Origin: Macrostomum lignano
Lineage: Eukaryota
Reading direction: 5' to 3'
DNA: 64,000 nt
Assembly (NCBI GenBank): GCA_002269645.1
Contig: NIVC01001334.1
Coordinates: 186,001-250,000, forward strand
Shown here: one piece after another, positions 1 through 60,470 of the stretch
How positions within the stretch are numbered: the first letter of the stretch is position 1
How the letters are laid out: every line of letters begins with the position of its first letter
Translations under genes and position numbers: made by a program
The notes under the pieces: generated by a model
What the model was told of the DNA's origin: nothing
What the model saw: the letters and a program-made list of their open reading frames with translations, nothing else
The model's database searches: none

Positions 1-3000
1 ATGTCGATTTACGGCTGCGTAGCCGACGGTAAGTGGCTCGATATAGTTCCACTAATATTGCAACCAGTTAAACAAAGTTCTCAACACTTTGGTAAGGGTG
101 ACGCAATATTCATACTTCTGGCACGCACAGTATACTCCTAGATTCGATTCGGCATTTAATTAACACTATTTGGGTTCCTGAAGGGAATATTAGCTTCGGG
201 CCTGTGCGATTCACCCTATCGATGACACAATGACACATATTTAAAGTACTGCCTGCCTTACTATGAATGAATTGCATCAGTACCTCCTATTACCTCTAAC
301 CTATATGACTTACGTTACTATAAATGATGTAAACTATGGCTTCGAAGCAGTTAATCAAATCTGCCTACTACGAATGCCGCACGCGGTTTCAGAGTGCCCG
401 GGCTCCTCAGTCTACCTGAATGGTCTCTGCTACTATGCAGGCACCGATCGCGCGGGGCCCCGCCACCGCAACATCACCCAGCAGCTCTGCAGCGGCATCG
501 AGTGGGGCTCGCGCGGTCGCATTTTCACGCCGAACTCCTTCGAAGCGAACATCATGGTGACGCTGGCTTCACTTCAGGATGGAACGGACGATCCTTACAG
601 CGTGTTTGTCGGTGTGGTCTATGATAACAGTAGCGACTCCTGGGTGCTGGACGGCACGCAGGACAAGCCGGGGTGGATGGCTTGGGACGCCCGAAACCCT
701 GAATACGGGCACTGGCTCGCCACGAGCATGGCAGGGCTCGAGCTCTGGACCTCGCATCTGTCTGAGGGACATCTTGCAAGCACGCTTTGTGAGACGAAGC
801 CAGGTAAAATGTAGATTAAAGTTTGTTTTAAGCTTTTTTATCTATTGATAGATACGGCCTCTGAAGTTGATTTGGATCAGTAAATTCGCTCATTCGCACA
901 TCCTCATAACTTTTTGGGAGTCTCCACAGAGCTCGGCAACTCCAGAATTTCCATGCCTTTATGTATTTCTATTCAACACATAGCTTTAATCTATCTGGGG
1001 ATACTTGCTATTTGGGGGATGCTTGCTATCTGGGGGGTGCTTGCTATTTGGGGGATTCTTGCTATCTGGGGGATTCTTGCTATCTGGGGGATTCTTGCTA
1101 TCTGGGGGATTCTTGCTATCTGGGGGATTCTTGCTATCTGGGGGGTGCTTGCTATTTGGGGGATTCTTGCTATCTGGGGGATTCTTGCTATCTGGGGGAT
1201 TCTTGCTATCTGGGGGATTCTTGCTATCTGGGGGATTCTTGCTATCTGGGGGATTCTTGCTATCTGGGGGATTCTTGCTATCTGGGGGATTCTTGCTATT
1301 TGGGGGATTCTTGCTATCTGGGGGATTCTTGCTATCTGGGGGATTCTTGCTATCTGGGGGTGCTTGCTATCTGGGGGATTCTTGCTATCTGGGGGATTCT
1401 TGCTATCTGGGGGATTCTTGCTATCTGGGGGATTCTTGCTATCTGGGGGATTCTTGCTATTTGGGGGATGCTTGCTATCTGGGGGATTCTTGCTATCTGG
1501 GGGATTCTTGCTATCTGGGGGATTCTTGCTATCTGGGGGATTCTTGCTATCTGGGGGATTCTTGCTATCTGGGGGATTCTTGCTATCTGGGTGGATGCTT
1601 GCTATCTGGGGGATTCTAGCTATCTGGGGGATTCTTGCTATCTGGGGGATTCTTGCTATCTGGGGGATTCTTGCTATCTGGGGGATTCTTGCTATCTGGG
1701 AGATGCTTGCTATTTAGGAGGATGCTTGCGGTCTTGGGGATGCTTGCTATTTAGGGGGATGCTTGCTATTTAGGGGGATGCTTGCTATTTAGGGGGATGC
1801 TTGCTATTTAGGGGGATGCTTGCTATTTAGGGGGAATGCCTATTATCTTTGTGAAGGCTTTATTCTGTTGTGTCCTTTTGTTACTTTTAGAAAAAAAGAG
1901 ATTCATAGCAAACATCTTTGTCCGTGACAATTTTATTCGAATAAGGTGGTTTATAAAACTGAAGAAGGAATTGATTCTTAAGATAATGTGCTTTTCAATG
2001 AATTTTCATGAATAATTTTTGCTCCTTGCTCATTGGGTGCCCCAAGGAGGGCACTAGATTGCTAGTGCATTGCTATGGAAATAGAGCCTTTTACTAAAAA
2101 AGTGCCAAAGAACTTTTTTAACCAGCTGCCGCATTTTCTCCCTCAGCCACAACGAAGACAAGAAGGTGCCGGAATCCGTACTACAACGTTCAGCGCGGTC
2201 GCAGGTACCTCACGCACGGCACCTTTGACAGGACTGTCCAGATTCCCCGAGCCAGCATCAACCTGTTTGAGGCTCTGCGCATCTGTCTGGACGAGTCCGT
2301 CCTGTCGCGTTGTAACTACGTCTACTGGGCGAACTCGAGCACTGCCGGGTCCGACTTCACCAGCTTCACCCTGGTTAGAAAGGACTTCAGAAACTTCTAC
2401 TCCATTGAAAATGAGATTGAGGACGCAAGATACAATGCGATTTCGGTGCACTGCCGAAGTTAGTACAAGCCATTGTCTGGATAATTTTTGGGCGTATTAG
2501 ACACAATGATATTAATATGCAAATTTAAGTGATGCGTAGGAGAGAAGCGAGACATCTAGAGAAGATTTGGTGGAGGATTTCGAACAAAAGCTATGACGAA
2601 AAGAGATTCCTGAAGAATAAGCTGAAGAATACTTAACAAAATTCTTTGCAGATGCAGAAAACATCATGACTGACGGAGGTTACACAACCAACACTATTGA
2701 GAAGCTGGAGTACTCACGCAAGAAATGCTGCACATGGGGTCAGCTGCCACTGGAAGCTCAGTTTCAGAATAAAGAAAACATGGGCTACTGGGACTCGGGC
2801 CTTATCATGGTGAGTTTGAGAATAGCTTTTCTCTGCTTTTAGAAAGCTGAACTTGCATTTGAAATTAAAATGCCTGTGGCAAGTTTTTCCTTGGAATTAA
2901 GTTGGATTACTGGCCTAGTAATACATCTACCTCTCAAGCTTCCAGTTTAATCCAAGGGAAATTGTGGGATTGGGTTATCTGGGTGATGAGGCAAACCCTT

Positions 3001-6000
3001 AAGCTGGGTCCGAAGTCAACATTGAGTCATTGCTCAAAATTTTCATCCGGTTCAGTTCAGCCCAATGGTTGAGAACGCAGCCGAACGAAATACGTAGCAG
3101 GTGCCACGGGAAAGAAGACTCAAAGTGTGAGGTAAAGGCTAGAGTTTTAGGGCATTGTCCCACGCTAAACTCATTATTCAAGACTTCGAAATCATCGCTA
3201 CTAAAAGTACATTTCGTGAGACGTACAGTGTGTTCATACATATGGTTTGTCATGGTCAATGATTGATTGTAGCCATTATTGGTTTCGCCACTCTAGAAAA
3301 ACTCCAAAAACCAAAGACGCAATCTGCCAATGCCTAACTCCAAAACCATAGATGCAATACCAATGCCTAACTCCAAAACCATAGACGCAATCGATTGCAA
3401 TACCAATGCCTAACTCTAAAACCATAGACGCAATCGATTGCAATACCAATGCCTAACTCCAAAACCATAGACGCAATCGATTGCAATACCAATGCCTAAC
3501 TCCAAAACCATAGACGCAATCGATTGCAATACCAATGCCTAACTCCAAAACCATAGACGCAATCGATTGCAATACCAATGCCTAACTCTAAAACCATAGA
3601 CGCAATCGATTGCAATACCAATGCCTAACTCCAAAACCATAGACGCAATCGATTGCAATACCAATGTCTAACTCCAAGACAATAGACGCAATCTATTGCA
3701 AAGGGCACAGAACTTTTTAAAGATTTAAAGTTCGTAATTTAAAAAAAAATCTAAGTTGACGAATTTGAAAAAATTCCTAAATAATTGAATTCTCATATTT
3801 TTGCTTTCTTCACAATTATTGCGAAAAGAATTTCTTTTTGACTGCAGATGACACTACCTCAGTTCATGCAAGCGATCTGATGGGCCTGTCCAAGTCGATA
3901 CGGCCCGTTTTCCGGAGGGAATCGACCTGAAAATTGAGTACTTGAACGAGTTGACCTCCAGCTATGAGCTGGCTTCAGTGGACTTGCAGATTGGCAAACC
4001 GGTGGGTTTGATGCAGCAAGTGTATCGATAGATGCAACTCAAATTTATTGCGTCTCTAAGCAGGATCTTCCAACTAAACTAGAATTCGTTCTTTGATTCC
4101 AGGGTGCCGTCCGCATTTTGCCGGAGAACTATTTTGTCCCAACCTACCTGCTGTTCGCTAATCTGATTTACACGAATCGCTTGAAGCTCAGAAACATGTG
4201 GAGGGACCAGGGCCGGCGCATGGGAGTGAAGCTGGACCTCTATGGAGTGGCCACTACTATTCCTCGTGAGTTTATGGGCATAACTACTTTTTTGCTGAAA
4301 TTATGAATTGGGGGTTGTAGCTCAGTGGTCAGAGCGTCGGGCTCACGACTTGAAGGTCTGGAGTTCGATTCCCGATCGCACTGGAACAGCTGTTTGTGTC
4401 CTTGAGCAGTACACTCAACTCTGCATTGCTTCAGTTCACCCTGCTGTAAAAGGGGTGCCAGCATTAGCTGGGGTAATTGAGGGTGTGTGGCGACTCCCCA
4501 GTCCTTGGACTGAACTGCCGTACGCAGCCTTCAGATGCGCCGCGCAATAGCTGCGGCTGAGCTGTCGTTGCACATCTGGCCCAACTGGGGCTGGTGTAAT
4601 CAATTATTAATTATTTTTACTAATTGAGTTACTTGGGATTAATTTTGTATTGCATAGGCTGGCAAAAGTTTTTGAAGTTAAAAACGAGCGTATAAGTTAA
4701 TGGTCTCTGCGAATTTCGGCCAAGTGTGGTAAAGATGAACAGGAGAGACAATCAGTTTAAAAAAATTGAATCGATACTTTTTAGTGAAAAATATCATCGA
4801 CAGCCTTTTAAATTTACCTAAAGGTTTCTTGAGTTACTTAAAATTCGTTCATTTCTCGGTGCGGTAATTTTTCAGCCACGTGGACATCCTGTAACTCTTA
4901 TCAAAGATACATCCTGTTGACGCACCCGTTCCTGGGCACAATGAAGCTCCCCTGTGTGAATCAATCGATGGTTTTGTACCAGAATCTGCACGAAGACTTC
5001 AACACAGGCAGGTCACTGCCAGACTATCGAGTCGGATTTGCCAGGGGATCAACTCAAATGATGCTGGACTTCACCGAATCGGCTATAGACGCCTCGACCA
5101 GCTTCTGGACTGGACTAGACTTCCTTGAGTTGCTGCCCTATTTTTTCTCATCAAAATGGCCGCTGCTCCTGCGAGTTGATGTCACAAACTCCAACGGGTC
5201 TGGAAAGTACATCGAATGCGGGTCTTGGAGTGTCGGCTCCAGAGCTGAAGGCTACCGGATGAAAGTGCAGGACTGTCTGAGCGGATTTCTAGACGAGGAC
5301 TATTTTCTGCTTCAGAATTCAGCAAAGTTTGGTCTGTTCTCCGGCCTCAACTGCCCGGAATCTTCAGGTGGCTTATTTGCCTGGTGGCAGCCCGACTGCG
5401 GCCTCCAGTCAGTCGTGAAGCTGGCTGGCGACAATGTGTCTGTCGGCTCACGGATGTGGTGGAAACCGACATTTGAGAGCGACACGCATCTCAACGTACG
5501 AATGAGCCTGGTCTTCAATCGCTCGATTAGCACTGAAGGTGAGTTTTCCTGCCCATTAGAACCGTTTAATAATGCAAAGTAAGGAAGTCAGCGTTCAGAA
5601 TTCTAACAACCCGTTGCTTCTCGTACAGTTGCAGCGCTCATGTTTGGCGATCCCTGCACCCTGGACGCTGACTGCCAAGCTAACAGAACGGTGTGCCTCC
5701 CCAGCGGCAGCACCATCGAGTCGACCTGCGACTGCGTTAGCCAGCGCGAAATGAGCCCCGAAGGCTGCAGTCTGGTAGCCGACTTCTCTGCGAAGCGAGT
5801 AGAAAACCCGACTGTGAGCTCGACGCTTGTCAGAAACCACACAGTACAGATTTGTTCAGACCTGAAATTCATTTTGAACAGAGGAAGCGGCTCCGTGCCT
5901 TCGACATCGCCGCCTAAAAAGCTGGCACAATTCTTCTCATACTATCTTAACCAATCCTCAACTTGGTACCCGACCCTGAAACCGATTGAGCCGCATCACC

Positions 6001-9000
6001 TACACGGTCCTCTGAGTGTGTTGTCAGGAGACGTGAACTCGGGACTCGATGTCAAGGAGTCCATCGATTTCAAGGTGTGCGCAAACTCGACGGTTCCAAT
6101 CGGCGCAAAGTGCAATTCGATCTCCTACTACTGCGTTGGATTCACAGCCGGCGAAAACGAGACTGTGGCGGACATGAACGAGCAGAACAACGCGGCTTGT
6201 CGTGACATCACGGAAATTTTAAAATGCAGACCGAATGGAGACACGGCTATAACAAATTATACCATATCACATTTGGCCCCAGACCCTATCACTCGACACG
6301 CTAGCATCAGTGTAGCGTACAATCTGACTATTACGATAAACTCCTTGGAATATCCTATAGTGGCTGTGGAGGACGTTACCGATAGTAACTTTCAAGCTGT
6401 TCTACACGTAACAAGTGGAGACCTACTGACTAACGGCAGCGACTCGGAAATCCGGAGTAGCCTGTGTACAGACAGGTGCTGCAAGTCCACGACCCGTCAC
6501 TCTATAAGCAGGCATACACCACAGGCGATGTTATCGACCTGTCCGTCTGGTCTCAGCCATTTGAGCTGAATCAGACTCAGTGCAATAATACTGCATTATT
6601 TTGTGTCGTATTTTACAACCCAATCGATGCCACGTATTCCGAATTCAATTTGAGCAACAGTATCGCTTGCCATCCGGTTGATACGTATTGCGACATATGT
6701 AAGTAATTTTATTAAAACATTACGAATAAGTGCTATTCATACAATTATCGAGCTTAATATAATAATTTAATTATTTCAGATGCAGAGTTTGCCGTTGACA
6801 CAATTGAGTCCCCGAGAACAGCGAGTTTCCCTGGGTGCCCATCTATTCGCACAATCTTACCTTGAACGTACACATTCGGCACGTCAGCGGCTCTTTGATA
6901 GACCCGGTGCTTCCCCCTCAGAGAAATTTCTATCCGTTCGTGCAGCTAAAGAGCAATGGCGGCTGGCCTGACATTTTGCCCTACCAGGTCGACTGTCCAG
7001 AAAGCTCAATTCAGGGGCTGAAGCAATCTGCTACCGCCGTGATCACCTGCTTCGCCGTTTTTCGGATTGCCTATGATGAGTGCGGCAAGTACGGCTCAAT
7101 ATGCGCTCAGATGACCAACTGGATCATGCCGAGTTTCATCGATAACAACTATTCGAACAAGGACTTCTGCTTTAATGTCTCTAGCCAATTTAAATGTCAG
7201 GGTGAGTAGCGTCTCGTTCGTTTTATTTTAGCTTTCATTTAACCACTAGAGGCAATTTATAGAAATTCAATAAAATGCATAAAGATATTAGCTAACAAAA
7301 GCATCGATTTCTAGCAAGTAAAAAATGAATCACTTGCTTTAAAATCATTTTAGGAATCCCAATGCATGGAGCATCACTCAAGCTACTGCCCAACCCGGTC
7401 AAGTATCCTTCGAACCTTTCCATTTCGATTAAGTGGTTTAACGGGACCTATATCGACGCTATGGTCTACCCAGATTGGAAAAACACCGTCTATAGGTGGA
7501 ACTGGCTAGAAAATGACAACGCGACTAGCTTTCATAACAAAGAGATCCATTACAAAGTTTCGTACGGGCTTGACTTGCGAGAGCACAATGTCACCGTGCG
7601 TTACTACAACAACTTCACCACATTCACTAAGACACAGATTGTGCTTGTAAATCCCGAACTAGAATCGGCGCTTCTGGCTACTATCAGCTATCAGCGGGCT
7701 TTTGCTCCTCTGAATGTCACCTTTTCGCTACAAATGGCCTTTGGCGACACGGGATCCTACTTACTTGCTGACTGCACATTCAATTTATACTTCAACGCTA
7801 ACCATAAATTCACAAAGCTGAGAATACCGGTGGACAAACAACTGAACTTCACATTCGTCTATAGCCCTAAAAATTCGGTTGTAAAATCGACACTTACGTG
7901 CGAAAATCATTTCGGCAGTGTAAGAAAGGACTTCGAAGTCCGTCTTTATCCACCAATTGATATTTACGGCCTCAGCGCATGGGTAAAAAAAACTGCCTGG
8001 AGGACGTTTTACGCGACGAATGTTTTCTTGAATGTCACTAACGGGACGGATGTGACATATTATATTTGGAGCTCCGGTGGGAATAATGTTTCAAAAGTTC
8101 ATCCAGAGCCTGTGTCCTTTTGGGAAGAGCTACCAGTGCCGTACAAATTTACTAAAATCGGAATTTTCGACCTATTTGTCAGTGCCAAGAGCTCCAGAAA
8201 CTCGGAGACAACACGCATTAGCGGCATAGTCGCCCAGAATCCAATCATTGGCCTCAATCTAAGTGGCAGTCCCGATGTCGCCTGTCCACCCGGAACTTTC
8301 GACCTGCAGCTCAGCCACACCGGTGCCAAACAGCCAACCAATGTCACCTGCAACACCACATTCCTAAACAAATCATCAGAACAGGAGGTGGTATTGTCCA
8401 ATTCGCCTTTGGCTCTATCGCTGAGCTGCACTCAAGAGGCGCTCGCTCTGCAGAGCAAAGCAACTGTTTTGTGCTGGAACTTGGTCTCTTCTGCAGTTGC
8501 CACTTTTTCTGTGACTTGCACTGAAGCTGTGAGCGGCTTGGTTGTTACAGCAAGTCAGTTGGCTACTACACCTGGGGTAAATATCAGCATCAGTGCTTTG
8601 CTAACAAATGGAACTGATGTTGTCTACGACTTTGAATTTGGAGACTCGACTGAACCGATCAGAATTGAATCTGCCACTACATTTGCTAAGGACTCCAGTG
8701 CTATTGTGTACCATGCCTTCGAGCTATTGGGAAACTATACAGTGGTTGTCAATGCATCAAATGGAGCTAGTTGGCAAATTGGTCGCATTTTAATAATAGT
8801 CATAGAAGAGCTAGTCGATTTGGAGGTAACGCATGACAAAGTTGTCTTGTACTTGCCCGGAATTTCCAACTTCTTTATTACCAACCTGCCGAATCACACC
8901 AGCAGTCTTGTGTTGTGTGATTTTCAATTCTCCAATTTTGGTTCTAGACGAACCTTCAATCCGAGACTTACTGATCAATCCAATGAGACGGTATCGTTTA

Positions 9001-12000
9001 CATTTCCAAAGGAATCTATTGGACAACAGTATGTTGCGATGACGTGCAGAAACCCGCTGTCAGCGATACCAATAGTTCGAAACTATTCGATTGAAATTGA
9101 GTTAGACGCTGTAATCATCGCAAATTTCACTACGAACGGAACCGTTTGGGATACGTTTCCAACTGAATTCCACCTGAAAATGAAGCGAATTGGTGCCGAC
9201 AGCTGCATCATAGTTAGATACAACGGTACCTTATCTGAAGACATGTTCGGCTTCTCACGCTGTCGCTCCATTGCTGAGGCTGAGGGCAGGTCATTCAAGG
9301 AGATCAATCACTTTAATTTGAGCTTAAGTTGGAGTCGTGTATTTCCAACATACGATGACTACTTAGTGACTGTCGAGGCATACAATGAGGTCAGCAACGA
9401 CACCGCATCACTGACAGCATCTGTGATCGACTGGCCTTGCTTCCACCCCGTTGTGAAACTGTTCGGCTCAAGCCCCCCGGGACTGCTGCTGGCAGATCAG
9501 ATCATTCAAACACTGAGATCGGAAGACGTCAATGTAACCAGTGAGAATGCTTTTAACTGCACCAAGCAAACGAATTTGACCAATCGATGGCAGGTATCTA
9601 CCAAGGATGCTTCACTACAAATTTGCACTCGAGATGAAGAGCGCTGCTCCTTGATCCGCAGGTCGCTGCCATACGGTCTCTGCAATGTGTCCCTCACAGT
9701 TGATCTTGCAGTGAAGCCGCCCGTATTTACAACGGTTTGGTTTCTAGTAAATGTGTCAAAAACTCCTCTGCATCTGGAACCCATCCAGGGCCCTGATGTC
9801 GTTGACTACAATACGACTGTTTCACTGTCTGTGTCAGCCAGGGATTGGGACGAAGAGGAAGGCAACTATACGGGAATGAAGTTTGAGTGGGTCTGCTTGA
9901 GAGTTGGAGAGACCGAAACTACCAACTTCATTTCCATTCCAACGGAATCGGATGTGAGGGCTCTGCCTACTCTGGCAGGATGCTTCGGTAATGGTCCCGG
10001 TGTCATTCTCGGCGGAAATCAGTCTCACGCTGCATCACTCTCGATTAGCTCGTACAACATGTTTCCCAACATCACTTACGAGCTCATAATGCGTCTGGCG
10101 AAAGACAGTCGACAAGTGATTCAGAAAAAGTTGCTTACTGTGCGCAGCCAACCGAATCCAGTGGGCCGACTGCAGTGCGTCGATAACTGCGGGCTCAAAG
10201 CCACTGCGAATCGCGCCATTACGTTTGAGCTGATATGTGACACGAATTGTGGAAACAAGTTCAAACCGTTGGGCTTCGAGCTGACAATAGTTCGAGTCAG
10301 CGAGAGCTGGTCCGAGCTTGGCAGTCGTGTTGGAGGAGCTGGCGAAGGCGTTTTGAGCATTCCGCCGAGTGAAATTTCTGCTGGTACTTTTTACCGGGTT
10401 GAGGGCCGAATGTGGAACTACATGCCAGAAAACAGTGTCAGATTGGAGCGCATTGTCGTTGTGAACGGACCGCCGGTTGGGGGAGCATGCACTGTGACTC
10501 CCACAGTTGGTAAGTACGATCTACATAGATTTACGTCTGTAGCTTGAGCATTATTCTTCTAAATCTCAAATTCATGTATTTATAAAAGGGTGCTATGAAT
10601 GAGTTGGCAGAAGTTTAACAATTTTTATACATGAAACAGATCGATCGCTGTAAAACCCCTGCACCTGACACGCACCCTCGCAGGTCAAACTAGCAAAACA
10701 ACTCACGAGTTCGAATGCACCGACTGGCGCGAGTTCGGCAATATTTCTTTGGGCCCACTGCGTTACAAAGTCGCGTTTTACCGCAGGGACATGGGCCAGA
10801 GGGCGACCATTCTGGAAACAACAGACTCCTGCAAAGAAGCTCTCTCTATTCCTCTGGGCGAGCCTTTGAGAGATTTCGCTGCCGAAATCATTTTCACAAT
10901 AACTGACGCATCTGGTCTGAAAACAGAGAGGACTGTGCCGATAAAGGTGAATTTTACAATTGTGGATTTCATTTTATCGCCCAGAAATTTAAACTACAAC
11001 ATGATTCAATCAACAAAAATATCTAACCGTTTCATCTACAGAGCTTCATAACAGATTACCTGGCTGAGGTGCTGACTCGTGAGCTGACACTCATTCTGTG
11101 GGGCAACGCGAGCGCCCTGGCCCAGCAACTCAGCGATGGGAACTACCAGCTGGCGTCCAACACTCTACTGACGGTGGCCGGCATGATGAACGCCTGGAAT
11201 GAAGACGGCGAGGGCGCTGGTGCGAGCGCAGCAAAGAAGCAGCTCTTCACCGCTAACATGACGAAGGTGCGCAGATTCGGGCCTCATTGTATTGTTTATT
11301 TGCATGGGAATATTTGAGAAACTGGCATAGGGCAACCAAGGACTTTTTGAAACTGCTATAAGTTTCATTCAAAGGAAAGCTTTTTTCACACAAAAAGCAG
11401 TCCTTTGAAACAATAGGTTTGGAATAAAGGCTCGGAGACCGTCCTCCATATGATCATTCTTAACTAGCTACAAGTATCTTTTGCAGATTAGAGTCTATTT
11501 AAACTTTTAGAAAGATTTTCAGCTTCCAGAGTACTAGAATTATAATAACACATAATCCCTCAGCTTCGAGACAGGTACATGAAAGTCGTGAACGACTTTC
11601 CCACCAGCACAGCTGGAGAAGTGGATAGAGTGGCCACCCTCATCATCTTTGGTGCTCAGAAGCCGCAGCAATTTAGTCTCACTGCTCAGGTGAGTTCCCG
11701 TAGTCGTTTGCCTTAGCTCGTAATGCGTATCAAATGCAATTACTCAAAAGCTCATACTACGATGGTATTTCAACTTCAGACAATGGCCCAACAGAAGCTG
11801 ACACAAATGGTAGGTGATATGTGGCGCCTTCAAAACGAAGTGTCCTTGAACGAGCAGCTGGCAGTATCCACAAAAATGATGGACTGCGGATTGGCGGTGT
11901 GGAATGCCACAAGGGCGTCTGTATCCGGCCTGTGCAAGAGGGGCTGCTCAGGTCAGCAGCAGGCGGACTCAGGGACCGCTAAGTCCAGCGTGCGCGAGAC

Positions 12001-15000
12001 AATGAGAGCGATTATGTCAGTGTTCGACTCGTTGGGCCAGCTCCTGCTCCACTCAAGTCCTCAGTTCACCGTATCGAGGCCCGGATACGCCTACTTCGGG
12101 GTACTTGAGCAGGCAGCAGAAACGGATGGATCAGCTCAAAGGACTCTTAAGAGTACTCAAGGATCTGTCAAACTGCCACGAATGTCCTCGATCGGCACCA
12201 ACGGCTGCTCAGTTAGGCTTCTCCTTACAGATGCGAATCCCTATCACTGGGACGAAAGCGCTGATCAGCTCTCATCCTCCGTGCTGAGTAACTGGATAAG
12301 CAACTGCTCAGCTCATCGTGTGAAAAGGTCAGCAGCTATCGCAGCTGGTAAAGAGTATTTGATGAAGCTGGATACTGGATCGATGGAGCTAAAAACTGTC
12401 AGGACTACACCTGCTGATCAATCGCTAATGGTATACCACAGCTTTGTTTCAACTGGTGATCCGGTACAACTGATTATCCTGCCAGAAGCTGGAGTCCAGC
12501 TCGAAGTGTTCATCGAGGCCGAAATGAAGCCAGACCCAATGAACTGCACCTGGCAGTACGTGATGCCAAAGACACTCGGTAACGGCAGCAGTGACTCAGC
12601 GATTCTGCTGCCAGCCGATAGCTTCCTGCCAAACCAAACGGTCAATGTTGGGTTGAGACGACTCGGCTGCATTAGAGATGAAAACAGAAATGTAAACTGC
12701 ACTAATCATACTGTTTCGTATAGTTTTGGAATAGTCGTTCAGAACTGCTACGCCTGGAACTCCAGCAGTGACTCGTGGGTTCGATTGAGTAGCGCGGAAT
12801 GCCAGGTGAGTATCAGTTCCTAACGTAAGCAAGTCTTGCTGTGCACACTCGGTGAAGAGGAAGAGTAAATAGTTGATGCAGAATTTCTACGGGAGAGGTC
12901 TAAGAAGAGGATTTTAGATACCCACTGAATTAGGTCAGGCAGACAGACGTAGTTTTGCAAAACATTTTCAGCTTTTAGGACTTTAAAACTTGAAAATATG
13001 TTATTTTCCAGTATATATCAGTTATAACTTCATTTATGTTTTCTTTCAGCCAAACGATGAGGCAACGGCTAGCAAAGCATCATTCCGAGTGAATCTGTTC
13101 GGCAGTTTGGGCGCCGGTGTGTCCTTCGTGCCGAACACCATCGACTTTGGCACTCTATTTGACAACTGGAGCGGCAAACTGGCTGACAGCAGAGCCGTGG
13201 TTGCCACGGTGGCCACGCTTTGGGTTCTGTTTCTGCCATTCGCAGTGCTGCTGCGTCGACTCGACAAGAGGGACGATTCGAGGGTATGGTTCTGACTGCT
13301 TGTTTATTTACAGTGATTAATTAGTACGGTGGCTCTCTGCAGCATTTCCCCACCTTATTCAGTTTCGGTACCTCCCACTGGTTGATGACAAGGCAGAAGC
13401 AGCCAACTACAGGGTTCAAGTGTTTACCGGATCGTATGGTAGTGAGGTACCGCTTGGTGTCTTCTTCACAGTTCGAGGACAGCGCTACAACGACCGAGTG
13501 AGAACCTTAAGTGACGGACTTCGTGAGGTAAGCGAATCGTGGCGCCACTGGGGTGCGACACTTTCACTTAACTCATTCTTCATTATACGTTCCTATTGAC
13601 AGACCATAAGGTTAATGTACATGTAAGAGCTACTCATAATGTGGGGGGGGGCTTTTATTTTTTCCCAGAATTGAGTCGAGGAATATAAAAATTAACCTAT
13701 TTGATCGATTGATTGTAGAATTTCACTCCTGGAAACGTCGATAACCTGTCATTCACCGCTCGAGAGCCACTCGGTGATATCAAGTCTATAAGCCTGTCCT
13801 ACGAGGGCACTCTAAGTGGATCAGGATGCTGGTATCTGGGCAGAGTCATTGTCACCGACTGCTCTACGAACAGGCGTTACATCTTTGTCTGGGAGAATGC
13901 TGTTCCACCGGACGAAGAAATTGTGATTAAGTGCGCGTCTTCTAGCGAGTTGAAGCACACCAAAAACCTGACGCGCAACCACCTCAGCAGGCGGATGCAG
14001 GATGATCACACGTGGCTATCGATTGCTACCAGGAAAACTGAGTCAAATTTCAGTCGTCTTGAGCGGTTTGCTGTCTGTTGGAATTTGCTATTCATGACTA
14101 TGATTGCAAACGCAATGTGGTAGGAGAACTTTTTTCAATTTCAACATTCTCGTGCGATATTCAAATGGCGGTATACAATGATACAGTAGAATATTGCTAT
14201 ATTTCAGGTACGGAGTTGCCGACAACTCATCTGAGATGTTCTCAATAGGACCCTTTAAAGTATCTTACGGCACTCTTATTACGTCAATTCTGGGTAGCCT
14301 GACAGTCATGCCAGTTTCCATGGCAACCGTGATATTGTTTCTAAAGTCTAGGGCAAAGTTGGCTCCCTCTGACTATGAAGTGCCGGAGTCCAGCTCTCCA
14401 GAGGAAAAGAAAACTGAGCATCAGCCGAAACGCATTTTCAATCCGGACTCGACATCATGCGAGGAGCACTCAGTCATTGAACAGCAGGAGACCTCCTGGC
14501 AGCTGCCGCACTGGTGCCGGTATATCGCCTGGGTGCTGCTCCTCTCGAGTGTCGTAACGGCGGGTGTCTTCATCGTTTTCTACGCGATGGATTGGGGACA
14601 GGAGAAATCAGAGGCCTGGCTCATAGCGTTCTTTCTATCGTTTTCTGAAACTGTGCTCATCATCCAGCCACTCAAAGTGCTCCTTATTGGACTCGTTATG
14701 GCTTTGTTCCTTAGAAAAGACTACGACTTGCTTGATTCTTCAAGCATTAGAGTTAGACAAATAGTCGACTCTCAAGGTACGAAAAATGTCTTTGTTTAAG
14801 TAAGTGAGACATCAATTACGAACTGTGCATACATGTAAAAAATTAATTTACAATTTCAGAGCGATTCCTAAACCTGTCCGTCGTTCAGCAAATGGAGGCT
14901 TCAAACGAAATAAGGAAAAAGGCGAAATGCGCTTTGTTTGAAATCATCCTGAGCGTTATTTACATCTTCCTTCTGTACTGCGTCTGCTTCGGATCAATGG

Positions 15001-17178
15001 ACACTGAGTCATTTTATCTGAACCAAAACCTGCGGCGGATGCTCAGGGAAAACAATTCTTCACCGGGATTTAGCCTCAATAAGGTAAGCGTAATTACCAT
15101 TCGCTATACTATTCAACTGTTTGCATCTTACCAACCTAATCAGTGCTAGAATACCTATTTTACTCCAGGTGCAAAAGTACCATGACGTGTACAGTTGGCT
15201 GCAGCATGTCGCGTTGCCAGCGTTCTTTCCGACCAACGCCGTGAATGGCAGGCCGCTGTCAAGTGAGGAGCTGAAATTCATGGCTGACGGAACCGGCTAC
15301 CGACTGGGTCATGTCAGTCTGCGTCAGCTGCGAATCAGACCACACTTTTTAAGGCATTCCGTTGCCGTGTCAGCCAAATTCGGACGGGACTCTGAGGACA
15401 CGGGCTGCTACGATGTTGCTTGGCGAGCTAGTGAGACTTGCAATGAAAGTGACGCGGACCCACTGAAAACTGCGTTTCGGGCCACGCATCTGTCCCGCTG
15501 GTCCACCTTCGGTCAGTACGGATGGTATTCAGGCGGCGGGTACGTGCTGGCTCTGCCAAGCAGCTTCTCACAGGCACTGAGCACAGTCGCTGCGGCTAAG
15601 GAAACTCAGTGGCTCACGAATCTGTCCAGGGCAGTCCTGGTTGAGTCAAATCTATTCTACCCTGACACAAATTTTTTTACCTCGCTCACGGTACTGATTG
15701 AACTGATGCCATTCGGCGGTACAGTCAGCTCGATATCCCTGCACTCCAGCCGTCTCTATCGGTACATCGGCGCCACTGGCGTGTTTCGCCTCTGCGCCGA
15801 GATTCTCACAGCGATCGGCACTCTCCTCCTGCTGGCCAAACAGATCTACAGTTGGAGACTCGAGGGCATCCGGCGATACTCCACCAATATTTGGCACCTG
15901 ATTCGACTCGCCACAGTAGTTGCCATGATAGTCGGTCTCAGCTGCCTGGTGGCCAGAAGCATCATGACCGTCACTGCGCTAGAGGAAGTGCTGAACTCAG
16001 CCACAGGCGTTACGAACGGCCTTACCAGCGTCATGTTTCTGGACGAGTCATTCTACTACTGCCTGGGAGTAGCGATGTTCTTCTCGCAGATCAGCTTTCT
16101 AAACACGGTGAAGTACTCGCGCAGCCTGGCTCACCTGGGTAGAACTCTGCAGAACTCAATCTCGCAGTTTAATTCCTTCGTCTGGGCGTTCCTCATCATT
16201 TTCTTTGCTTTCTGCTTTGCCAGTTATCTGGTGCTGGGCTCCAGCGAACCAGACTACAAGTCAATAACGGATACCGCCTTCACGCAGCTCATTGTTATGC
16301 TTGGAAAGCTGAATGTGAACTTTGGCAACAAGCATTCCATTGTGGCCACGTTCTTGCTGTTTGGCTACTCGCTAATCATGATCTTCATCGCGGTGAACAT
16401 TTTTGTGGCACTGCTAAATGAAAGCTACTATGCTGGACTGGCGGATTTGGCGGCTAGCGAAGAGGATTTTCAGACTCTGGACAGCATCGTGCAGCTGTTC
16501 AAGTCCCTACTGCGAAAGGACGCGGAGCAGGAGTACATTGGCGAGATCGAGACTGACGGTAAGTAAAGTCCGATTCGAAAACACGACTGTATATCGAGCA
16601 CTGTACGTCACATCCAATTGTGATTCAACTGTTTCACACTTTAGTCGGGCGGAACTATTTACAAAATAACAGTACGAATCAATTCAGGGCCAAAATAACA
16701 GTACGAATCAATTCAGGACTAAGAGTGATGCGTAGGCGGACGCGCCGATGAGCAAGGACGGGGGAGTACTATAAATTGTATTCCCGCCCAGGCTGAGCGA
16801 TAATTAATGCGAGGTGTGAATTGCGCGACGAACTTAAAGCATGGTTGCATTCTTTAATTGGAAACACCTGCCTGCAGCTGTTGCATGATTAAAGTGTGTA
16901 ATAAGGACTATTTTTTAAGAGCTATATTTTCTTATCTGAAGACCTTTCTTCATACTCCTAGCAGCTTCTTCGTCAATCGGATCATTCCAGACCCAGTCCG
17001 CCACGTTAACGACGTCCTGGTCTCCCTGACCAGCCGCGCCGAGTCCGAAGACCTGATGGAGCGCCAGCTGGAGAGCTCACTCCGCGCGGCGCTGTTCGCC
17101 CGGCCAACCGGGGGCAGAGACGGTGGGGCGATGGACAGCTCAGCTGCAGTCGGAGTCGAGGATGCAGCGAAAAACTAA
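1..17178 (+). CDS. PKD1L: Polycystin-1-like (PKD1L/REJ family) 11-TM receptor, 5'-truncated by the window edge; 22 exons/exon parts
   Basis: Hand-spliced GT-AG exons: 1-28, 393-803, 2147-2458, 2652-2809, 3848-4001, 4103-4265, 4876-5538, 5635-6407, 6476-6698, 6780-7201, 7354-10509, 10684-10946, 11042-11266, 11564-11689, 11780-12805, 13050-13283, 13363-13527, 13719-14119, 14208-14776, 14860-15083, 15169-16558, 16962/16965-(17029 or 17178). Family motifs: PKD-domain VxYxFxFGDS, REJ 'FECTDWRE', post-GPS 'VPNTIDF', PLAT 'YRVQVFTG...WYLGRVIV', 'NAMWY', TOP-domain 'LRQLRI', 'YSGGGYV', 'WLTNLSRAVLVE'. Phases are consistent except at exons 3848-4001 and 6780-7201 and the last exon. The subfamily number cannot be assigned. 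Confidence 0.93.
393..803 (+). CDS. PKD1L exon: C-type lectin-like domain
   Basis: CPGSSVYLNGLCYY...LCSG...VFVGVVYDNSSDSWV...WDARNPE...STLCE fits the CTLD layout; ttcag acceptor and gtaaaa donor, phase 1-1. Confidence 0.75.
991..1836. repeat. Intronic minisatellite, 18-bp unit TGCTATCTGGGGGATTCT (~47 copies)
   Basis: Tandem units are directly visible; lies in the PKD1L intron 804-2146. Confidence 0.97.
2147..2458 (+). CDS. PKD1L exon: PAN/apple-like domain (frame differs from track ORF 2075..2500)
   Basis: The phase-1 frame reads TTKTRRCRNPYYNVQRGRYLTHG...EALRICLDESVLSRCNYVYW...AISVHCR; 312 nt, open, phase 1-1; C..C spacing is PAN-like. Confidence 0.55.
2652..4265 (+). CDS. PKD1L exons: F5/8 type C (discoidin)-like domain
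   Basis: Ends with NRLKLRNMW...MGVKLDLYG, matching the discoidin C-terminal strand (consensus lRvElyGC). The window's first exon scrap MSIYGC looks like the end of a second copy. Confidence 0.55.
3300..3700. repeat. Intronic minisatellite, 43-bp unit AATGCCTAACTCCAAAACCATAGACGCAATCGATTGCAATACC (~9 copies)
   Basis: Head-to-tail copies with no unique spacers. Confidence 0.95.
4310..4600 (+). mobile_element. tRNA-derived SINE with a CORE/Deu-Nin-like central domain
   Basis: The tRNA-like head has an A box (TAGCTCAGTGG) and B box (GTTCGATTCC) but no closing acceptor stem. It is followed by GTGTCCTTGAGCAGTACACTCAAC...TTCACCCTGCTGTAAAAGGGGTGCCAGC, resembling conserved SINE cores, and an AT-rich tail. 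The family name is from memory of consensus sequences. Confidence 0.8.
4876..5538 (+). CDS. PKD1L exon: divergent fibrinogen-related (FReD) domain
   Basis: FNTGRSLPDYRVGF...FWTGLDFL...LLRVDV...FAWW..DC matches FReD core motifs; 663 nt, phase 1-1. Confidence 0.7.
7354..10946 (+). CDS. PKD1L exons: PKD (Ig-like) repeats and REJ module
   Basis: 3156-nt open exon with NGTDVTYYIW, NGTDVVYDFEFGDS, GNYTVVVNASN, YLVTVEAYNEVS, REJ-type FEWVC and NGPPVGGACTVTP. Confidence 0.88.
12745..16558 (+). CDS. PKD1L exons: GPS-like motif, TM1, PLAT, TM2-5, TOP and channel-like TM6-11
   Basis: CYAWNSSSDSW..C, VPNTIDF, hydrophobic helices, PLAT motifs and polycystin TOP-domain motifs, as listed for the gene. Confidence 0.92.
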
Positions 17179-19127: not shown

Positions 19128-19892
19128 ATGCCTGCTGCGTTAAAAACACCAGCAGATGCGGTGAAAGCCGTTGAAAACGGTCAGAAAAAGAAAGCACCAC
19201 TGATGAACAATCGGAATCAGAAGGAATCGAAGAAGAAACCACCACAGAAGGAATTGAAGAAGCAACCACCACAGAAGGAATCGAAGAAGCAACCACCGCA
19301 GAAATCGAAGAAGCAACCACCGCAGAAGGAATCGAAGCAGCAACCACCGCAGAAGGAATCGAAGCAGCAACCACCGCAGAAGGAATCGAAGCAGCAACCA
19401 CCGCAGGAATCAAAGCAGCAACATCTGCAGATGGATCCGAAGCAGCAACCTCAATACACAGAATTCAAGCAGCAGCAGCTTAGGCTTCGGCTGCTTCTCC
19501 TGGCCGCAGTTGTGTCGACCTGCGTTGGCTTATGCCTGGTGGCAGCGATGCTGCTGCTCTACCGAAGCAGGCACAACTTGCAACGCCAGCTGCCACCAAA
19601 CGTGAGCATCCCGGCTAGACAGCTGGTCAACTACGACAACGGCAGCTTCACCAGCAACTGGTGGCGCCTTGACCAGTGCATCCGCAAGCTGAATTGCCCG
19701 CCAGATTTCTTTGCCTGCCGAGCCGTCACGGCGATGCCAGACGACGCCACAGACGCGAATCAATTAAGTGTGCCATTGTACCTGTGGCATCACTTCCTGC
19801 TGCTGGGCTGGGCGCTGTTCACCTGCCATCAGGCGGCCGGCATGCGCCAGCTGTTCCTCACTCCTGTCGGCGTGGCCGGCCAGGGTGACTAA
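19128..19892 (+). CDS. Orphan 254-aa ORF: K/Q/P-rich repeats, one predicted TM helix and a Cys/Trp-containing tail
   Basis: AAAATG start context, (QKESKKQPP)-type 24-bp repeats at ~19215-19410, hydrophobic LLLLAAVVSTCVGLCLVAAMLLLY, GC3-rich codons in the 3' half. No family recognised. Confidence 0.45.
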   Translation: MPAALKTPADAVKAVENGQKKKAPLMNNRNQKESKKKPPQKELKKQPPQKESKKQPPQKSKKQPPQKESKQQPPQKESKQQPPQKESKQQPPQESKQQHLQMDPKQQPQYTEFKQQQLRLRLLLLAAVVSTCVGLCLVAAMLLLYRSRHNLQRQLPPNVSIPARQLVNYDNGSFTSNWWRLDQCIRKLNCPPDFFACRAVTAMPDDATDANQLSVPLYLWHHFLLLGWALFTCHQAAGMRQLFLTPVGVAGQGD

Positions 19893-23261: not shown

Positions 23262-25773
23262 TCAGGTCACGTGAGCGAACTCCCGCACCAGCGGATTAAG
23301 CGACTCAACGGACAGCAGGCGGGTGAACTCAACCATCTTATTCTCAACTGTGCGCATATCGATGAAGGTGAGCAGGAGTCTGGGGTAGAGCTGCATGGCA
23401 TCGGGCACGCCAAACTCGCGGGCCAGGTACTTCTTGAGCAGCAGCGAATAGAAAGACTGGGCGCGCTCTAGCGAGTCCCTGGCCGGAGAGGCCGGCATGG
23501 AGTCGGTGTTGAACAGCTTCAAAGCCAGCATCAGCATCTTCACCGTGCTGTCGTGCCGGCTGTACAGCTCCAGCCGGGCGTACACGTTGTGCGAGTTGGC
23601 GCAGTACTGGTCCAGGTCCGCCAGGGTGAGGTCGCTGGAGCCCGGGTGCATCGACACGATGGCTGCCACCGCCGCGGCCAGCTCGCGCATCAGGGACACC
23701 CCGCCGCTGCCCGACAGACGCCGCTGCGATTCCTGATCATCATCGGCGTTGGACGAAGCCAGCGGGATCTCCCAGGAGCCGGTGACAGGGTTGAAGAAGA
23801 AGGACGAGTACAGAATCACTAGGCCGTAGATGTTCACCTAAAATTTTACGGTGAGATTCTGGATGAGATTATGTGGACTGGGGTGAGATTTTAAATGAGA
23901 TATGTATAAAATATGATATTCTAGTTGAGATTATACGGTCTGGGATGAGATTATAGATGAAATTTTATGAGCTAGGGTGAGATTCCAGTTGAAATCATGT
24001 GGGCCAGGTAAGATTCTAGATAAGATTTCATAGAAAAGGTGAGATTCCAGCTGAGATCATTCGGGCTAGGGTGAGATTCCAGTTGAAATCATGTGGGCCA
24101 GGTAAGATTCTAGATAAGATTTCATAGAAAAGGTGAGATTCCAGCTGAGATCATTCGGGCTAGGGTGAGATTTCAGTTGAGATTCTCCGGGCTAGGGTGA
24201 GATTCCAGATGAGATAATGCAGGCTAGGGTGAGATTGCAGCTGAGATTATTTTGGCTAAGGTGAGATTCCACCTGAGATTATTTTGGCTAGGTGAGATTC
24301 CAACTAAGATTATTTTGGCTAGGGTGAGATTTCATCTGCGATTATGCACCTTGAGCATGAGAATCTGAGAGTCCTTGTCGACCTCGCTAAATATTGGTAT
24401 AAGCTTGACCACTGAGATGATGCGCCGTATACAGGCCTCCATCTGGTTGAAGGCCTGCTCCAGCCGGCCAACTCCGTCCTTGGCCTCGCCGCCGTCGGGC
24501 CTGTCGCAGTCCGACATCTGCAGGGCGTCGCTCAGTCGGTCCTGAGCCTCGCGGAGGCCATCCAGGCACTCTAGTTCGTTGCTTGTGAGCTCCGAGCTCC
24601 AGGTGCGGCCGGCCAGGGTGGCCTCAGACCAGGCCAGCGCCAGGGCGCCAGTCGTGACCGGCCGGGACTGCAGCTGCGGCGGCTGCGGCTGGCGGTGCTG
24701 CGACTGCTGCTGCTGGGTTGACAGAAGGTGGTCCAGGAACACCGCTGATGCGCGCCTGCGGGCTGGGGAGGGGCAGAGTGGGATTAGGATTGGCGCGATT
24801 CTCACGGAGATTGGGGCGATTCTCACGGAGATTGGGGCGATTCTCACGGAGACCGGGGCGATTCTCACGGAGATTGGTGTGATTCTCACGGATATTGGTG
24901 TGATTCTCACGGAGATTGGGGCGATTCTCACGGAGGTTAGTGCGATTCTCATGGAGATTGGGACGATTCTCACTGGGTCGAGGCGATTTTCTTTGCGATT
25001 GCGGTAAATGTGGGCGACTCTCAGTCACATGCAACACAGGATACGGACTCACCACTATCGCGATTGTGCACCCCGAGAACGCCGCCACGAGGCGACGACG
25101 CGGCAGCTGCCGCCGACTCCGAGGACGACCAGGGCAGCTGCAGTTGCTGCCTGGCTGTTCGCTTCTTCGGCTTGGCCCGCTGCTCCAGCTTCTCAGGCGG
25201 CAGGATGAGTTCCTTCTTCATGCCGACACGGAGGCACTTCTCCAGCCGGCAGGTAGGGCAGTGCTTCCTCTGCGGGCCGCTCACGTCACATCCGCCGCCG
25301 CGGCTGCACGGCTTGATTCGTTCGCGAGATTTTAGCGCATTGCGCCGGAAAAACGCTTTGCAGCTCTCGCAGGTCAGCCGGTCAAAATTGTAGCCGGTGG
25401 CCGGCTCGCTGCACACCGCGCAGAACCGGGCGTCAACCGGCAGGGCCGCCTTGCGCCGACGGGTTCGAACCACCGGAGCGCCGCCCTCCTCGGCGCCGCC
25501 GTCCTGACGCTGGCCGTCGCTGTTGAGCAGCAGCAGGGCCCGCTGGTCGGACTCGGACTGCTCGTCGTAGTCCAGCAGCAGGCTGGGGTGGTGATGCCGC
25601 GGCAGGCCGATCCCGACATCGTCTTCCTCGTCATAGTCTTCGGCGTCGTCGAAGTTCTGTTCGTCCTCTTCGGTGACGTCGGCTGAGGAGGCGGCTTCGG
25701 ATTTCACTGACATGGAAGGCAGCAGTGGCAGGCGGCCAGTGGGTTGACGGGCTGAGCTGTCCATGGTGGCCAT
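23262..25773 (-). CDS. HR96: Nuclear hormone receptor, NR1J (HR96/DAF-12/NHR-8) group, ~569 aa
   Basis: Exons 25773-25053, 24762-24350, 23837-23262 (phases 1, 0; 1710 nt total). The C4 zinc fingers CAVC...CESCKAFFRR...C...MKKELIL carry the ESCKA P-box diagnostic of NR1J. The LBD has the signature IISVVKLIPIFSEVDKDSQILMLK and AF-2-like PLVREF. Confidence 0.9.
23845..24332. repeat. Degenerate ~31-bp GGGCTAGGGTGAGATTCCAG-type repeat filling HR96 intron 2
   Basis: Recurrent GTGAGATT core, with an ~89-bp block duplicated. Confidence 0.85.
24787..24972. repeat. 21-bp minisatellite GCGATTCTCACGGAGATTGGG in HR96 intron 1 (~9 copies)
   Basis: Directly visible. Confidence 0.95.
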
Positions 25774-39928: not shown

Positions 39929-41409
39929 TCACACTTGCACCATCAGCTGGATGCTTTTCAGAGCGGCATAGGTGCCACCAGTGGCGTATTTCCACATCAT
40001 CTTCTTGAGCGAATCAGCGATGGCGGAGGTCTCGTAGACGCCGCTCGGGTTGCAGTAGGCGCAGCTCGAGTACCACCAGCCGCCGTTACCGCAGTGAGCC
40101 ACGGAGCAGCTGGAGCCGGACCTGCCATCGTTGTCCCGGTCCATAGTGGAGAACTGGCTGCCTTTGTGGTAGGCCAGAGCGTCTCCCGTCATGTTGGAGC
40201 TGGCGGTCAGGTACGAGGTGTAAGTCATGGTGTAGTTGGTGCTGGCATCGCCTACGGTGAAGCCGGAGTACTCGGCGATGAAGAGTTCGTCAGCCCAGGT
40301 GACGGCCTCCACCCGCAGCACTCTCGGCGTGCTGCCCGTCAGCTCGTTGATGGTGCGAAGGCCTGAAATTATGATCCACGTGGTTGCACACTGGTTTCTT
40401 CTACCGATGCCACCATGGCACTGTCTGAGCTGACTCACCGATCCAAAAGTCGACGTCATCCCCGAACCCGTGCTCGTAGTTAGTCCAGTTCTGAGCAAAG
40501 CTAAGCGCTCCCTTCGATCGGTGCTGGATGATGCGAAACGTACGGTCAGCGATGGTCACGTAGCCTGAAATTGTTACGCATGAACGGGCATATGAGGTCA
40601 GCAGTTCTAAAAAATCGAAATATTTGATCGCACTTCAATCGTTTCAATAACTTACTTGCATTGCGAGACCAACTACTACCAGCACTGCCGCTACTACTGG
40701 CAGTAGTTAGCCTGCGAAGCACGGAGCTTTGCGAAGCTTTTTCGGAAAAGTCGGCGCCTTTCTCGGCGGACATCAGACAGAGCTCCGACTGCGGCAGAAA
40801 GGCGGACGCTGAGCAGGCGGCGGGCCCGGCGGCCGAGCACTTGACTGCGCACTCGATGTCGCTGCGAGCCCATGAGGACACTGCAGCGGCCGGAACAGAC
40901 GGGGCCACCGACTCGGTGGAAAACTCTGAGTAGATTTTGCAGGGCGAGTCGATTTTGTAGTACGAGTATTATGAGTAATGCGACGTCACCATTGAGAACA
41001 ATAAGTGATTGCCATCGATTGTCATACTGGCAACCCCCCCCCCTAGCCTGGAGGCGCATCATGTGACGCTGCTCAGGATCCTGTTTTATATGACCTATAA
41101 ACTGTTGTTTGCTGCTGTTGTGTGTTTCGTCGGTAGCGCTCCGCTCAGGCGATCCACTGCGGGTGAGCCGCCTGAGGAAGCTTATCACCATCGCCTTCTT
41201 TCCCAGATCCGCCACTGATTTCATCCCAAGACGCTTCGGAGGCCGTCAAAGCGCGAACAATTCCCCCAGTGTGTGCTGATGTGTCTTCTAAAGCCTCTGA
41301 TAACTCTCGGGGCTCATTTATTCTTATATCGCTACTACCAATTCTTACCTGTCGCAGTCGCAGCTGCTGTTGCATAGAAGCAGAGAGAAATTATTATCTT
41401 AATTAACAT
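39929..41409 (-). CDS. Secreted PAN/apple + fibrinogen C-terminal domain protein (FReD lectin-like), ~296 aa
   Basis: Exons 41409-41349 (signal peptide MLIKIIISLCFYATAAATAT), 40925-40656 (SDIECAVKC...C...C PAN), 40564-40439 (RIIQHR..F.QNWTNYEHGFG..DFWIG), 40362-39929 (LRVE, FSTMDRDND, GGWWY..C); 891 nt, all junctions phase 1. Confidence 0.9.
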
Positions 41410-60300: not shown

Positions 60301-60439
60301 ACCTGGAGCACGTCAGGCAGCGCGGCCGCGACCAGCTGGCCTTCGCCAAGCAGCAGCTGGAGGAGGAGGTCGCGATGAGGCGCCAGCTGCAGGTGTGAAG
60401 CTTTACGTGTCTGTCTGTCTATCTGTCTGTCTGTCTGCC

Positions 60440-60470
<31 letters not shown>

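Follow-up and report, generated by a model that had tools for sequence, protein, structure and literature searches.

Here we report the analysis of a 64,000-nucleotide stretch of the genome of the flatworm Macrostomum lignano (GenBank assembly GCA_002269645.1, contig NIVC01001334.1, positions 186,001 to 250,000 of the forward strand; hereafter, the window), the beginning of which is occupied by a + strand gene predicted to encode a polycystin-1-like (PKD1L/REJ) protein of the 11-transmembrane (11-TM) type. Bases 1-7201 of the window likely represent 5' exons, though not the first one, of this single long gene, and would specify a series of extracellular modules that precede the PKD repeats. 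A preliminary description of this DNA had proposed a polycystin-1-like receptor with an N-terminal mosaic, which was borne out by the identification of the PKD, REJ, PLAT, Polycystin_dom, and PKD_channel domains together with shuffled modules upstream of them. PKD1-family proteins are thought to sense the outside of the cell, their ligands are mostly unknown, and their variable N-terminal modules provide the best clue. A flatworm member with a fibrinogen-related domain (FReD) and two modules that match no profile would widen the range of ectodomain designs, and M. lignano, a laboratory model amenable to RNA interference and transgenesis, is well suited to studying the role of such modules. This interest has its limits: module shuffling in the PKD1 family is already well known, and both lectin-type modules of the gene look degenerate.

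Exon chain and PKD1-family core

Eleven exons on the + strand, joined at GT-AG sites, span bases 1-10509, with AG at every acceptor and GT at every donor. Their reading frame runs on into the PKD, REJ, PLAT, polycystin, and TRPP-channel domains and ends at about 16.5 kb; the 11-exon chain gives 2192 stop-free codons once three one-base placeholders are inserted. Coding potential was assessed by a codon-usage log-odds score trained on homologue-verified exons versus intron sequence. In the proposed frame, exons 2, 3, 4, 6 (both halves), 7, and 8 scored 0.33-0.50 per codon, and for each exon tested this frame outscored the other two. Because these values exceed those of the intron windows (mean -0.46, maximum 0.29), the upstream exons are coding rather than chance open frames. 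Each recognisable module resides on a phase 1-1 exon or exon block, and phase 1-1 exons are a classical mark of exon-shuffled extracellular modules. The chain opens with the partial exon 1 (1-28), which encodes ..MSIYGCVAD and ends in phase 1 at the donor GTAAGT at position 29; beyond it, the gene extends to the left of the window.

The PKD1-family core begins in the large exon 11 (7354-10509), which encodes the PKD repeats and most of the REJ region, as recognised by Pfam (PKD, 2.8e-8; REJ, 4.3e-23 at 7329-10544), and whose product shows 40% identity to the M. lignano protein A0A1I8GF32. The remaining exons, with approximate boundaries, occupy 10684-16563 and encode the end of REJ (Pfam, 1.3e-7 at 10635-11048), a GPS-like region, the first transmembrane segment (TM1), PLAT, further transmembrane segments, the polycystin domain, and the TRPP channel; beyond 7201, GT-AG introns that keep the frame are available for every junction. 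Following the first transmembrane segment, the spliced PLAT domain scored 28.7 bits (cut-off 23) over profile positions 1-111 of 117, hydrophobic stretches were seen in the exons between 13050 and 16500, and the C-terminus matched Polycystin_dom (1.7e-31) and PKD_channel (5.7e-24) in Pfam. The closest solved structures of the channel part in PDB are PKD2L1 (6.7e-36), PKD2, and PKD1L3 (3.6e-15).

The GPS domain had no Pfam match in 11717-12820. In the GPS-like region (12700-13150), the aligned position of the His-Leu-Thr (H-L-T) cleavage motif is occupied by ..FRVNLFGS.., and by ..FKVNLFGS.. in the M. lignano relative, with no His-Leu-Thr. Some members of the PKD1 family are likewise uncleaved, so the missing motif does not exclude membership in this family, and the predicted protein may not be cleaved.

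Modules of the ectodomain

In Pfam searches with the raw exons and the spliced upstream modules, only Fibrinogen_C (weakly), PKD, and REJ were recognised. A more permissive tandem-copy test, in which six copies of each module were compared with shuffled controls in order to lift weak matches past the HMMER filters, produced mostly noise, and neither Lectin_C, nor PAN, nor F5_F8_type_C surfaced.

Exon 8 (4876-5538, phase 1-1) was confirmed as encoding a predicted FReD that has lost its calcium-binding loop. Its product scored 21.1 bits (E 3e-4) on Pfam Fibrinogen_C, slightly below the cut-off of 22, and a phmmer search against 1.8 billion representatives returned only four proteins at E <=0.001, namely M. 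lignano A0A1I8JIH8 (2.9e-52, 51% identity) and three FReD proteins (1e-5, 1e-4, and 8e-4). One of the latter is found in a UniProt 'Fibrinogen C-terminal domain-containing' cluster, whose member P0010 scored 63 bits on Fibrinogen_C. In PDB, the best sequence matches were ficolin-1 or fibrinogen gamma in 15 of 16 cases, with ficolin-1 being the best. The fibrinogen-related domain of the preliminary description is thus upheld by Pfam, phmmer, and PDB matches. The exon 8 domain has a core in common with ficolins, the fibrinogen gamma chain, and invertebrate fibrinogen-related proteins (FREPs), including FW.GL, LRV, Y, F, and the C...WW..C pair. A seven-residue calcium loop (FSTxDxDND), located beside the usual ligand pocket, is deleted both in exon 8 and in the M. 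lignano relative, and is present in the canonical FReDs P0005 and P0007, as well as in the FReD encoded 35 kb away in the window. In contrast to ficolins and FREPs, this FReD lacks the calcium loop and is predicted to be set in a channel-type receptor rather than in a secreted oligomer.

A separate - strand gene (39929-40970), located about 23 kb from the FReD-bearing PKD1-like gene, combines a PAN domain (19.3 bits and E 1e-3 on Pfam PAN_1) with a canonical FReD (85 bits) that follows it directly and has an intact calcium loop.

Exon 9 (5629-6698, with a frame break at 6475-6476) encodes an EGF/EB-like module and cysteine repeats 1 and 2, and exon 10 (6780-7201, with a frame break at the C-run 6809-6812) encodes repeat 3. 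The EB/EGF-like Cys module and the three Cys repeats noted previously were recovered, the former as a six-cysteine pattern with C-x-C spacing and the latter by cysteine spacings that are conserved in M. lignano. The EGF/EB-like module (approximately 5649-5768) follows the pattern C-x5-C-x6-C-x10-C-x-C-x10-C, its six cysteines are invariant in M. lignano, and the UniProt name of an M. lignano relative is 'EGF-like domain-containing'. The repeats are about 150 residues each, with cysteine clusters at 6078-6227 (spacing 11-7-22-9), 6581-6691 (7-22-7), and 7048-7197 (11-7-22-9); the cysteines of both the EGF-like module and the repeats are kept in two M. lignano paralogues at 36-37% identity. EB (PF01683; 21.6 bits over six copies) and CARDB (PF07705) surfaced weakly, solely in the tandem-copy test, and we regard both matches as leads. 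A profile search of the cysteine-repeat region against PDB found no family. An apparent tblastn likeness of these repeats to the PKD-repeat exon was rejected as an artefact of sum statistics, since the direct blastp comparison gave E 0.1 or worse.

Exon 2 (393-803, phase 1-1, codon log-odds 0.37) matched neither Pfam (Lectin_C was negative, the tandem-copy test included) nor PDB by phmmer, and its single-sequence AlphaFold model had a mean confidence (pLDDT) of 32. For targeted tests, we built hidden Markov models (HMMs) from typed reference domains, comprising five vertebrate C-type-lectin-like domains (CTLDs), six discoidins, and four PAN domains; Pfam recognises all of these references (CTLD, 5/5 as Lectin_C; discoidin, 6/6; PAN, 4/4). 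The C-type lectin of the preliminary description is supported, as a C-type-lectin-like domain, by the five-member CTLD HMM (11.7 bits) and by hhalign (z about 4), with public profiles negative. None of 2000 shuffled sequences scored as high (maximum 7.9 bits), exon 2 scored nothing on the discoidin or PAN HMMs, and the hhalign z-scores against CTLD were 3.7 (global) and 4.3 (local). Over HMM positions 1-93, exon 2 aligns colinearly and matches the hallmark CP..CY, C1, W.DG, and W...P positions. This targeted test, as the one comparison that detects the domain, supports exon 2 as a putative CTLD of the long form, with C1, C4, and the long-form N-terminal cysteine pair present. The C2 and C3 cysteines of the inner disulfide are absent, NPE stands at the EPN/QPD position, and there is no WND; these features would fit a CTLD fold without the canonical lectin site.

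The modules between the CTLD and the FReD match no family. Exon 3 (2147-2458, phase 1-1, codon log-odds 0.46) encodes a 104-residue four-cysteine module, and exons 4-7 (2652-4265) encode a module of about 175 residues. The latter begins in exon 4 (2652-2809; phase 1 in, phase 0 out; codon log-odds 0.41), passes through the 37-nt micro-exon 5 (2946-2982), which has AG/GT junctions and fitting phases, and exon 6 (3848-4001), in which a frame break near the T-run 3908-3911 separates a first part in frame 0 (codon log-odds 0.50) from a second part in frame 2 (0.46), and ends in exon 7 (4103-4265; GAVRILPENYF...KLDLYGV; donor GTGAGT).

The preliminary description had named exon 3 a PAN-like domain and exons 4-7 a second discoidin, with the end of a first discoidin at 1-18. 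In the corresponding alternative, exon 3 would be a very divergent PAN/apple domain, exons 4-7 a very divergent discoidin (F5/8 type C), and another discoidin would lie to the left of the window. By eye, colinear motif likenesses are visible (I-x-x-D-x-x-Y-T-T-N-T, EIVGLGYL, GAVRILPENYF, and the LDLYGV and MSIYGC endings), and A-Q-F...G-Y-W, the sole local HMM match, falls at the correct place of the profile. In exon 3, one cysteine pair is outer and the other is of the helix-then-strand kind, the AlphaFold model of this exon (pLDDT 58, pTM 0.51) shows the order beta-alpha-beta-beta-beta, and the true PAN+FReD gene 23 kb downstream indicates that such modules circulate in this genome. Against this, all statistical tests were null (Pfam, phmmer against PDB, HMMs, hhalign with z from -1.1 to 1.3, and Foldseek).

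For exon 3, Pfam PAN_1 and PAN_4 were negative even with six tandem copies, the PDB sequence search gave nothing meaningful, hhalign against PAN gave z of -0.7 (global) and -1.1 (local), and the four-member PAN HMM aligned nothing, although the same HMM finds the PAN domain of the neighbouring gene at 8.9 bits; exon 3 has no similarity to that domain. A Foldseek search of its model against PDB returned no PAN and no match with E below 0.2. For exons 4-7, Pfam was negative for discoidin even with six-fold amplification, the PDB sequence search gave no match at E up to 10, the six-member discoidin HMM scored -1.6 bits (587 of 2000 shuffles were as high), and hhalign gave z of -0.9 (global) and 1.3 (local). 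In addition, the RILPENYF motif is separated from LDLYG by about 27 extra residues, compared with fewer than 10 in discoidins. The claimed discoidin end in exon 1 amounts to six residues (MSIYGC), and the resemblance of its YGC ending to the end of the exon 7 module (..LDLYGV) is confined to this six-residue stretch. The discoidin assignment of exons 4-7 is plausible but unproven, and we consider the alternative as a whole unlikely. The combination of FReD, PAN, and discoidin is therefore not supported, with FReD being the only one of the three to pass any test; two modules and the cysteine repeats of the gene have no assignable family.

Homologues of the upstream modules were also sought by a word-indexed search, using the spliced 642-residue N-terminus and exons 3-7 alone, which gave no match with E cut-offs of 0.01 and 10 and a sparse index that also missed A0A1I8JIH8. 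A metagenome scan gave one match, on a prokaryotic-looking contig with membrane-protein and glycosyltransferase-like open reading frames; it was dismissed as a chance match caused by the search pattern itself. Exon 7 is 41% identical to residues 140-185 of M. lignano A0A1I8JK18, located just upstream of the FReD of that protein.

Relatives and continuity of the gene

The nearest relatives are the uncharacterised M. lignano predictions A0A1I8JK18, A0A1I8JIH8, A0A1I8JK13, A0A1I8GF32, and A0A1I8GK20, which are 36-51% identical to the predicted protein and are named in UniProt only as 'EGF-like domain-containing', 'PKD domain-containing', or 'TECT1 protein'. A0A1I8JK18 (3185 residues; in the same cluster as A0A1I8JIH8) is colinear with 4097-16290 of the window, and A0A1I8GF32 (40% identity over exon 11) with 5328-10502. 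The relatives share with the window gene the order of the exon-7 equivalent, FReD without the calcium loop, EGF-like module, three cysteine repeats, PKD, REJ, PLAT, and channel. They are fragments that stop short of the CTLD and of both unassigned modules. At the identity observed, the window gene would be a paralogue of them or a counterpart from another species. As to annotated homologues with the same architecture, A0A1I8JK18, A0A1I8JIH8, and A0A1I8GF32, all from M. lignano, were the only ones found; they are alike from exon 7 onward and truncated upstream of it. The architecture from FReD onward thus already exists as unannotated M. lignano predictions in UniProt.

A point absent from the preliminary description is that a continuous reading frame requires one base to be added at each of three places: the T-run 3908-3911, GG at 6475-6476, and the C-run 6809-6812. 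The coding signal crosses all three breaks. At 3908-3911, the codon bias switches from frame 0 before the break to frame 2 after it; at 6475-6476, M. lignano proteins align in frame 3 before and in frame 2 after, with a conserved cysteine located just before the break; and M. lignano conservation likewise continues across 6809-6812, where the break is avoidable via a weak acceptor at 6808. A 29-nt intron in place of the break at 6476 was rejected, being too short and removing the conserved cysteine. Since all three are one-base deficits at short single-base runs and the coding signal continues across them, the most likely cause is assembly error, with homopolymers called one base too short.

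If the breaks are instead real, the locus would be a decaying duplicate (pseudogene) of a PKD1-like gene, with no full-length protein produced. The occurrence of three one-base breaks within 3 kb agrees with this scenario, as does the absence of the window's protein from the protein collections searched, and the 36-51% identity of the closest M. lignano proteins fits a family of several divergent copies. However, codon bias and conserved cysteines persist on either side of each break, no stop codon lies inside any exon frame, and the other 9 kb of coding sequence downstream needs no correction. Moreover, one-base deficits at short single-base runs are the usual consensus error of long reads, and the third break can be spliced around. 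We therefore regard a pseudogene as improbable. If the breaks are assembly indels, similar errors may affect other genes of the assembly.

In a two-gene reading, exons 1-7 would form an upstream gene of their own that encodes a secreted lectin-like protein, with the PKD1-like gene starting at or after 4876. In its favour, the M. lignano models A0A1I8JIH8 and A0A1I8JK13 start exactly at the start of the FReD exon, the 610-nt intron 7 contains a mobile element, and a stand-alone PAN+FReD gene lies nearby. Against it, the AG acceptor of exon 8 is in phase 1 and no start codon followed by a signal peptide is present, the GTGAGT donor of exon 7 matches exon 8 in phase, and the single model A0A1I8JK18 includes both the FReD and, directly upstream, the exon-7 equivalent. 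We consider this reading very unlikely. Given the phase-1 acceptor of exon 8 and its lack of a start codon with a signal peptide, the ectodomain must begin further upstream.

In A0A1I8JK18, residues 1-139 and approximately 186-210 resemble translated intron, and the 'FQ' before the exon-7 equivalent corresponds to a translated ..ttccag acceptor, as in the window; this public model is probably partly unspliced.

Several points weigh against the assignment of the entire 1-7201 region to one PKD1-like gene and against the role proposed for its product. We infer the joining of exons 1-6 to exon 7 onward from the strand, frames, phases, short introns, and codon bias. The homologue searches and the metagenome scan returned no homologue of exons 1-6, and the M. 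lignano models either begin at the FReD or carry apparent retained-intron sequence upstream of exon 7, so they do not prove the splicing. Exon 5 is the least certain exon and was kept solely for restoring the phase between exons 4 and 6, and the three frame breaks, all located within 3 kb, might be genuine lesions. For the CTLD call, the HMM used was small and derived from five typed vertebrate domains, each Pfam-verified as Lectin_C. The function is proposed entirely by analogy, and the cleaved-N-terminus mechanism of polycystin-1 (PC-1) may not apply to a protein whose GPS-like region lacks H-L-T.

Possible function and surrounding window

Human PKD1 (hPKD1) carries LRR. The sea urchin REJ proteins and human PKD1L2, PKD1L3, and PKDREJ resemble the predicted protein in having REJ, PLAT, a C-terminus of the 11-TM type that includes a TRPP-like channel region, and an N-terminus with variable lectin-type modules. 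For the human and sea urchin PKD1 family, the listed N-terminal modules are C-type lectin (CTL), EGF, SUEL, WSC, and PKD; CTL was described in SpREJ1-3, hPKD1, hPKD1L2, and hPKD1L3, and EGF in SpREJ1 (PMC1934368). FReD is not among the modules in this list, and no description of FReD in a polycystin was found in the PKD1-family literature searched. Compared with the listed human and sea urchin members, the window gene alone has FReD and the cysteine repeats, and its GPS-like region is without H-L-T.

In planarians, PKD1-like genes act in ciliated sensory neurons, and a complex N-terminal ectodomain has been called peculiar to chordate PC-1 (bioRxiv 10.1101/2024.07.17.603829). The Schmidtea mediterranea PKD1-like genes, compared here by their description, belong to the same phylum, have the same core of REJ, PLAT, and polycystin domains, and hint at a role in sensory cilia. 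The window gene would encode some 1200 residues of additional modules N-terminal to the PKD repeats and, as predicted, is at odds with the notion that only chordate polycystin-1 has such a complex ectodomain.

We propose that the ectodomain consists of consecutive modules acquired by exon shuffling, with a phase-1 intron on either side of each. From the N-terminus, these would be the end of an unseen module, the non-canonical CTLD, the 104-residue four-cysteine module, the module of about 175 residues, the FReD without the calcium loop, the EGF-like module, and the three cysteine repeats of about 150 residues, followed by the PKD repeats, REJ, the GPS-like region, PLAT, and the TRPP-like channel domain. 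By analogy with characterised members of the family, the protein may form the large subunit of a TRPP-type channel complex in the ciliary or sperm membrane, together with a PKD2-type partner, where its N-terminal modules might bind an external or tethered ligand and so gate, bias, or localise the channel. The CTL domain in the N-terminus of PC-1 is required to activate PC-1/PC-2 (PMC7728438), and the lectin domains of sea urchin REJ proteins are under positive selection and have been implicated in gamete recognition (PMC1934368). Since the GPS-like region is without the H-L-T cleavage motif, release of the N-terminus as an agonist is less likely here.

The gene was previously suggested to encode a glycan or pattern sensor coupled to a TRPP channel. 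The predicted protein has a TRPP-channel domain, and the idea of glycan sensing is weakened by the degenerate sites of the CTLD and FReD. Neither of the two lectin-type modules has the canonical calcium and sugar sites, so that protein-protein binding, or binding of a non-canonical ligand, is as likely as glycan binding. A more specific scenario, which we put forward as a speculation with little confidence, is that the 104-residue and approximately 175-residue modules and the three cysteine repeats represent extracellular families without described relatives, recruited, along with a FReD that has lost its calcium loop and a CTLD devoid of the sugar motifs, into a PKD1-like receptor specific to macrostomids that senses a non-glycan ligand, such as a sperm or seminal protein of the partner, or a prey or microbial surface, and is coupled to a TRPP channel.

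Tandem arrays are abundant throughout the 64-kb window. Within the PKD1-like gene, a tandem-repeat scan detected an 18-nt microsatellite unit repeated 47 times in intron 2 (991-1835) and a 43-nt unit repeated eight times in intron 5 (3353-3701). Intron 7 contains a tRNA-like element on the + strand (4311-4383), which scored 34.5 bits on the Rfam tRNA model (gathering score 29); ARAGORN calls no tRNA at this position, and the element is probably the head of a tRNA-derived short interspersed element (SINE).

Further along the window, a + strand open frame of 254 residues (19128-19892), for which no family was found, encodes about nine KESK(K/Q)QPPQ repeats and, after them, a single hydrophobic segment. 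On the - strand, a gene for a nuclear hormone receptor (23262-25773) includes the zf-C4 DNA-binding domain at 25021-25773 (4.3e-20) and likely ligand-binding-domain exons at 23262-24973, with an in-frame 21-nt repeat. The Wnt gene on the + strand (35409-37939) is represented by an N-terminal piece (35409-35600, E 1e-4) and a C-terminal exon (37469-37939, 9.4e-20), which are separated by about 0.6 kb of a 33-nt tandem unit; approximately 1.6 kb of a 15-nt unit lies just upstream (33641-35254). Finally, a + strand gene at 55300-61278, interrupted by tandem repeats at 58.7-60.7 kb, encodes a coiled-coil protein with a Rabaptin-like region (2.6e-10) and a FYVE zinc finger (1.1e-7 at 60757-61278).

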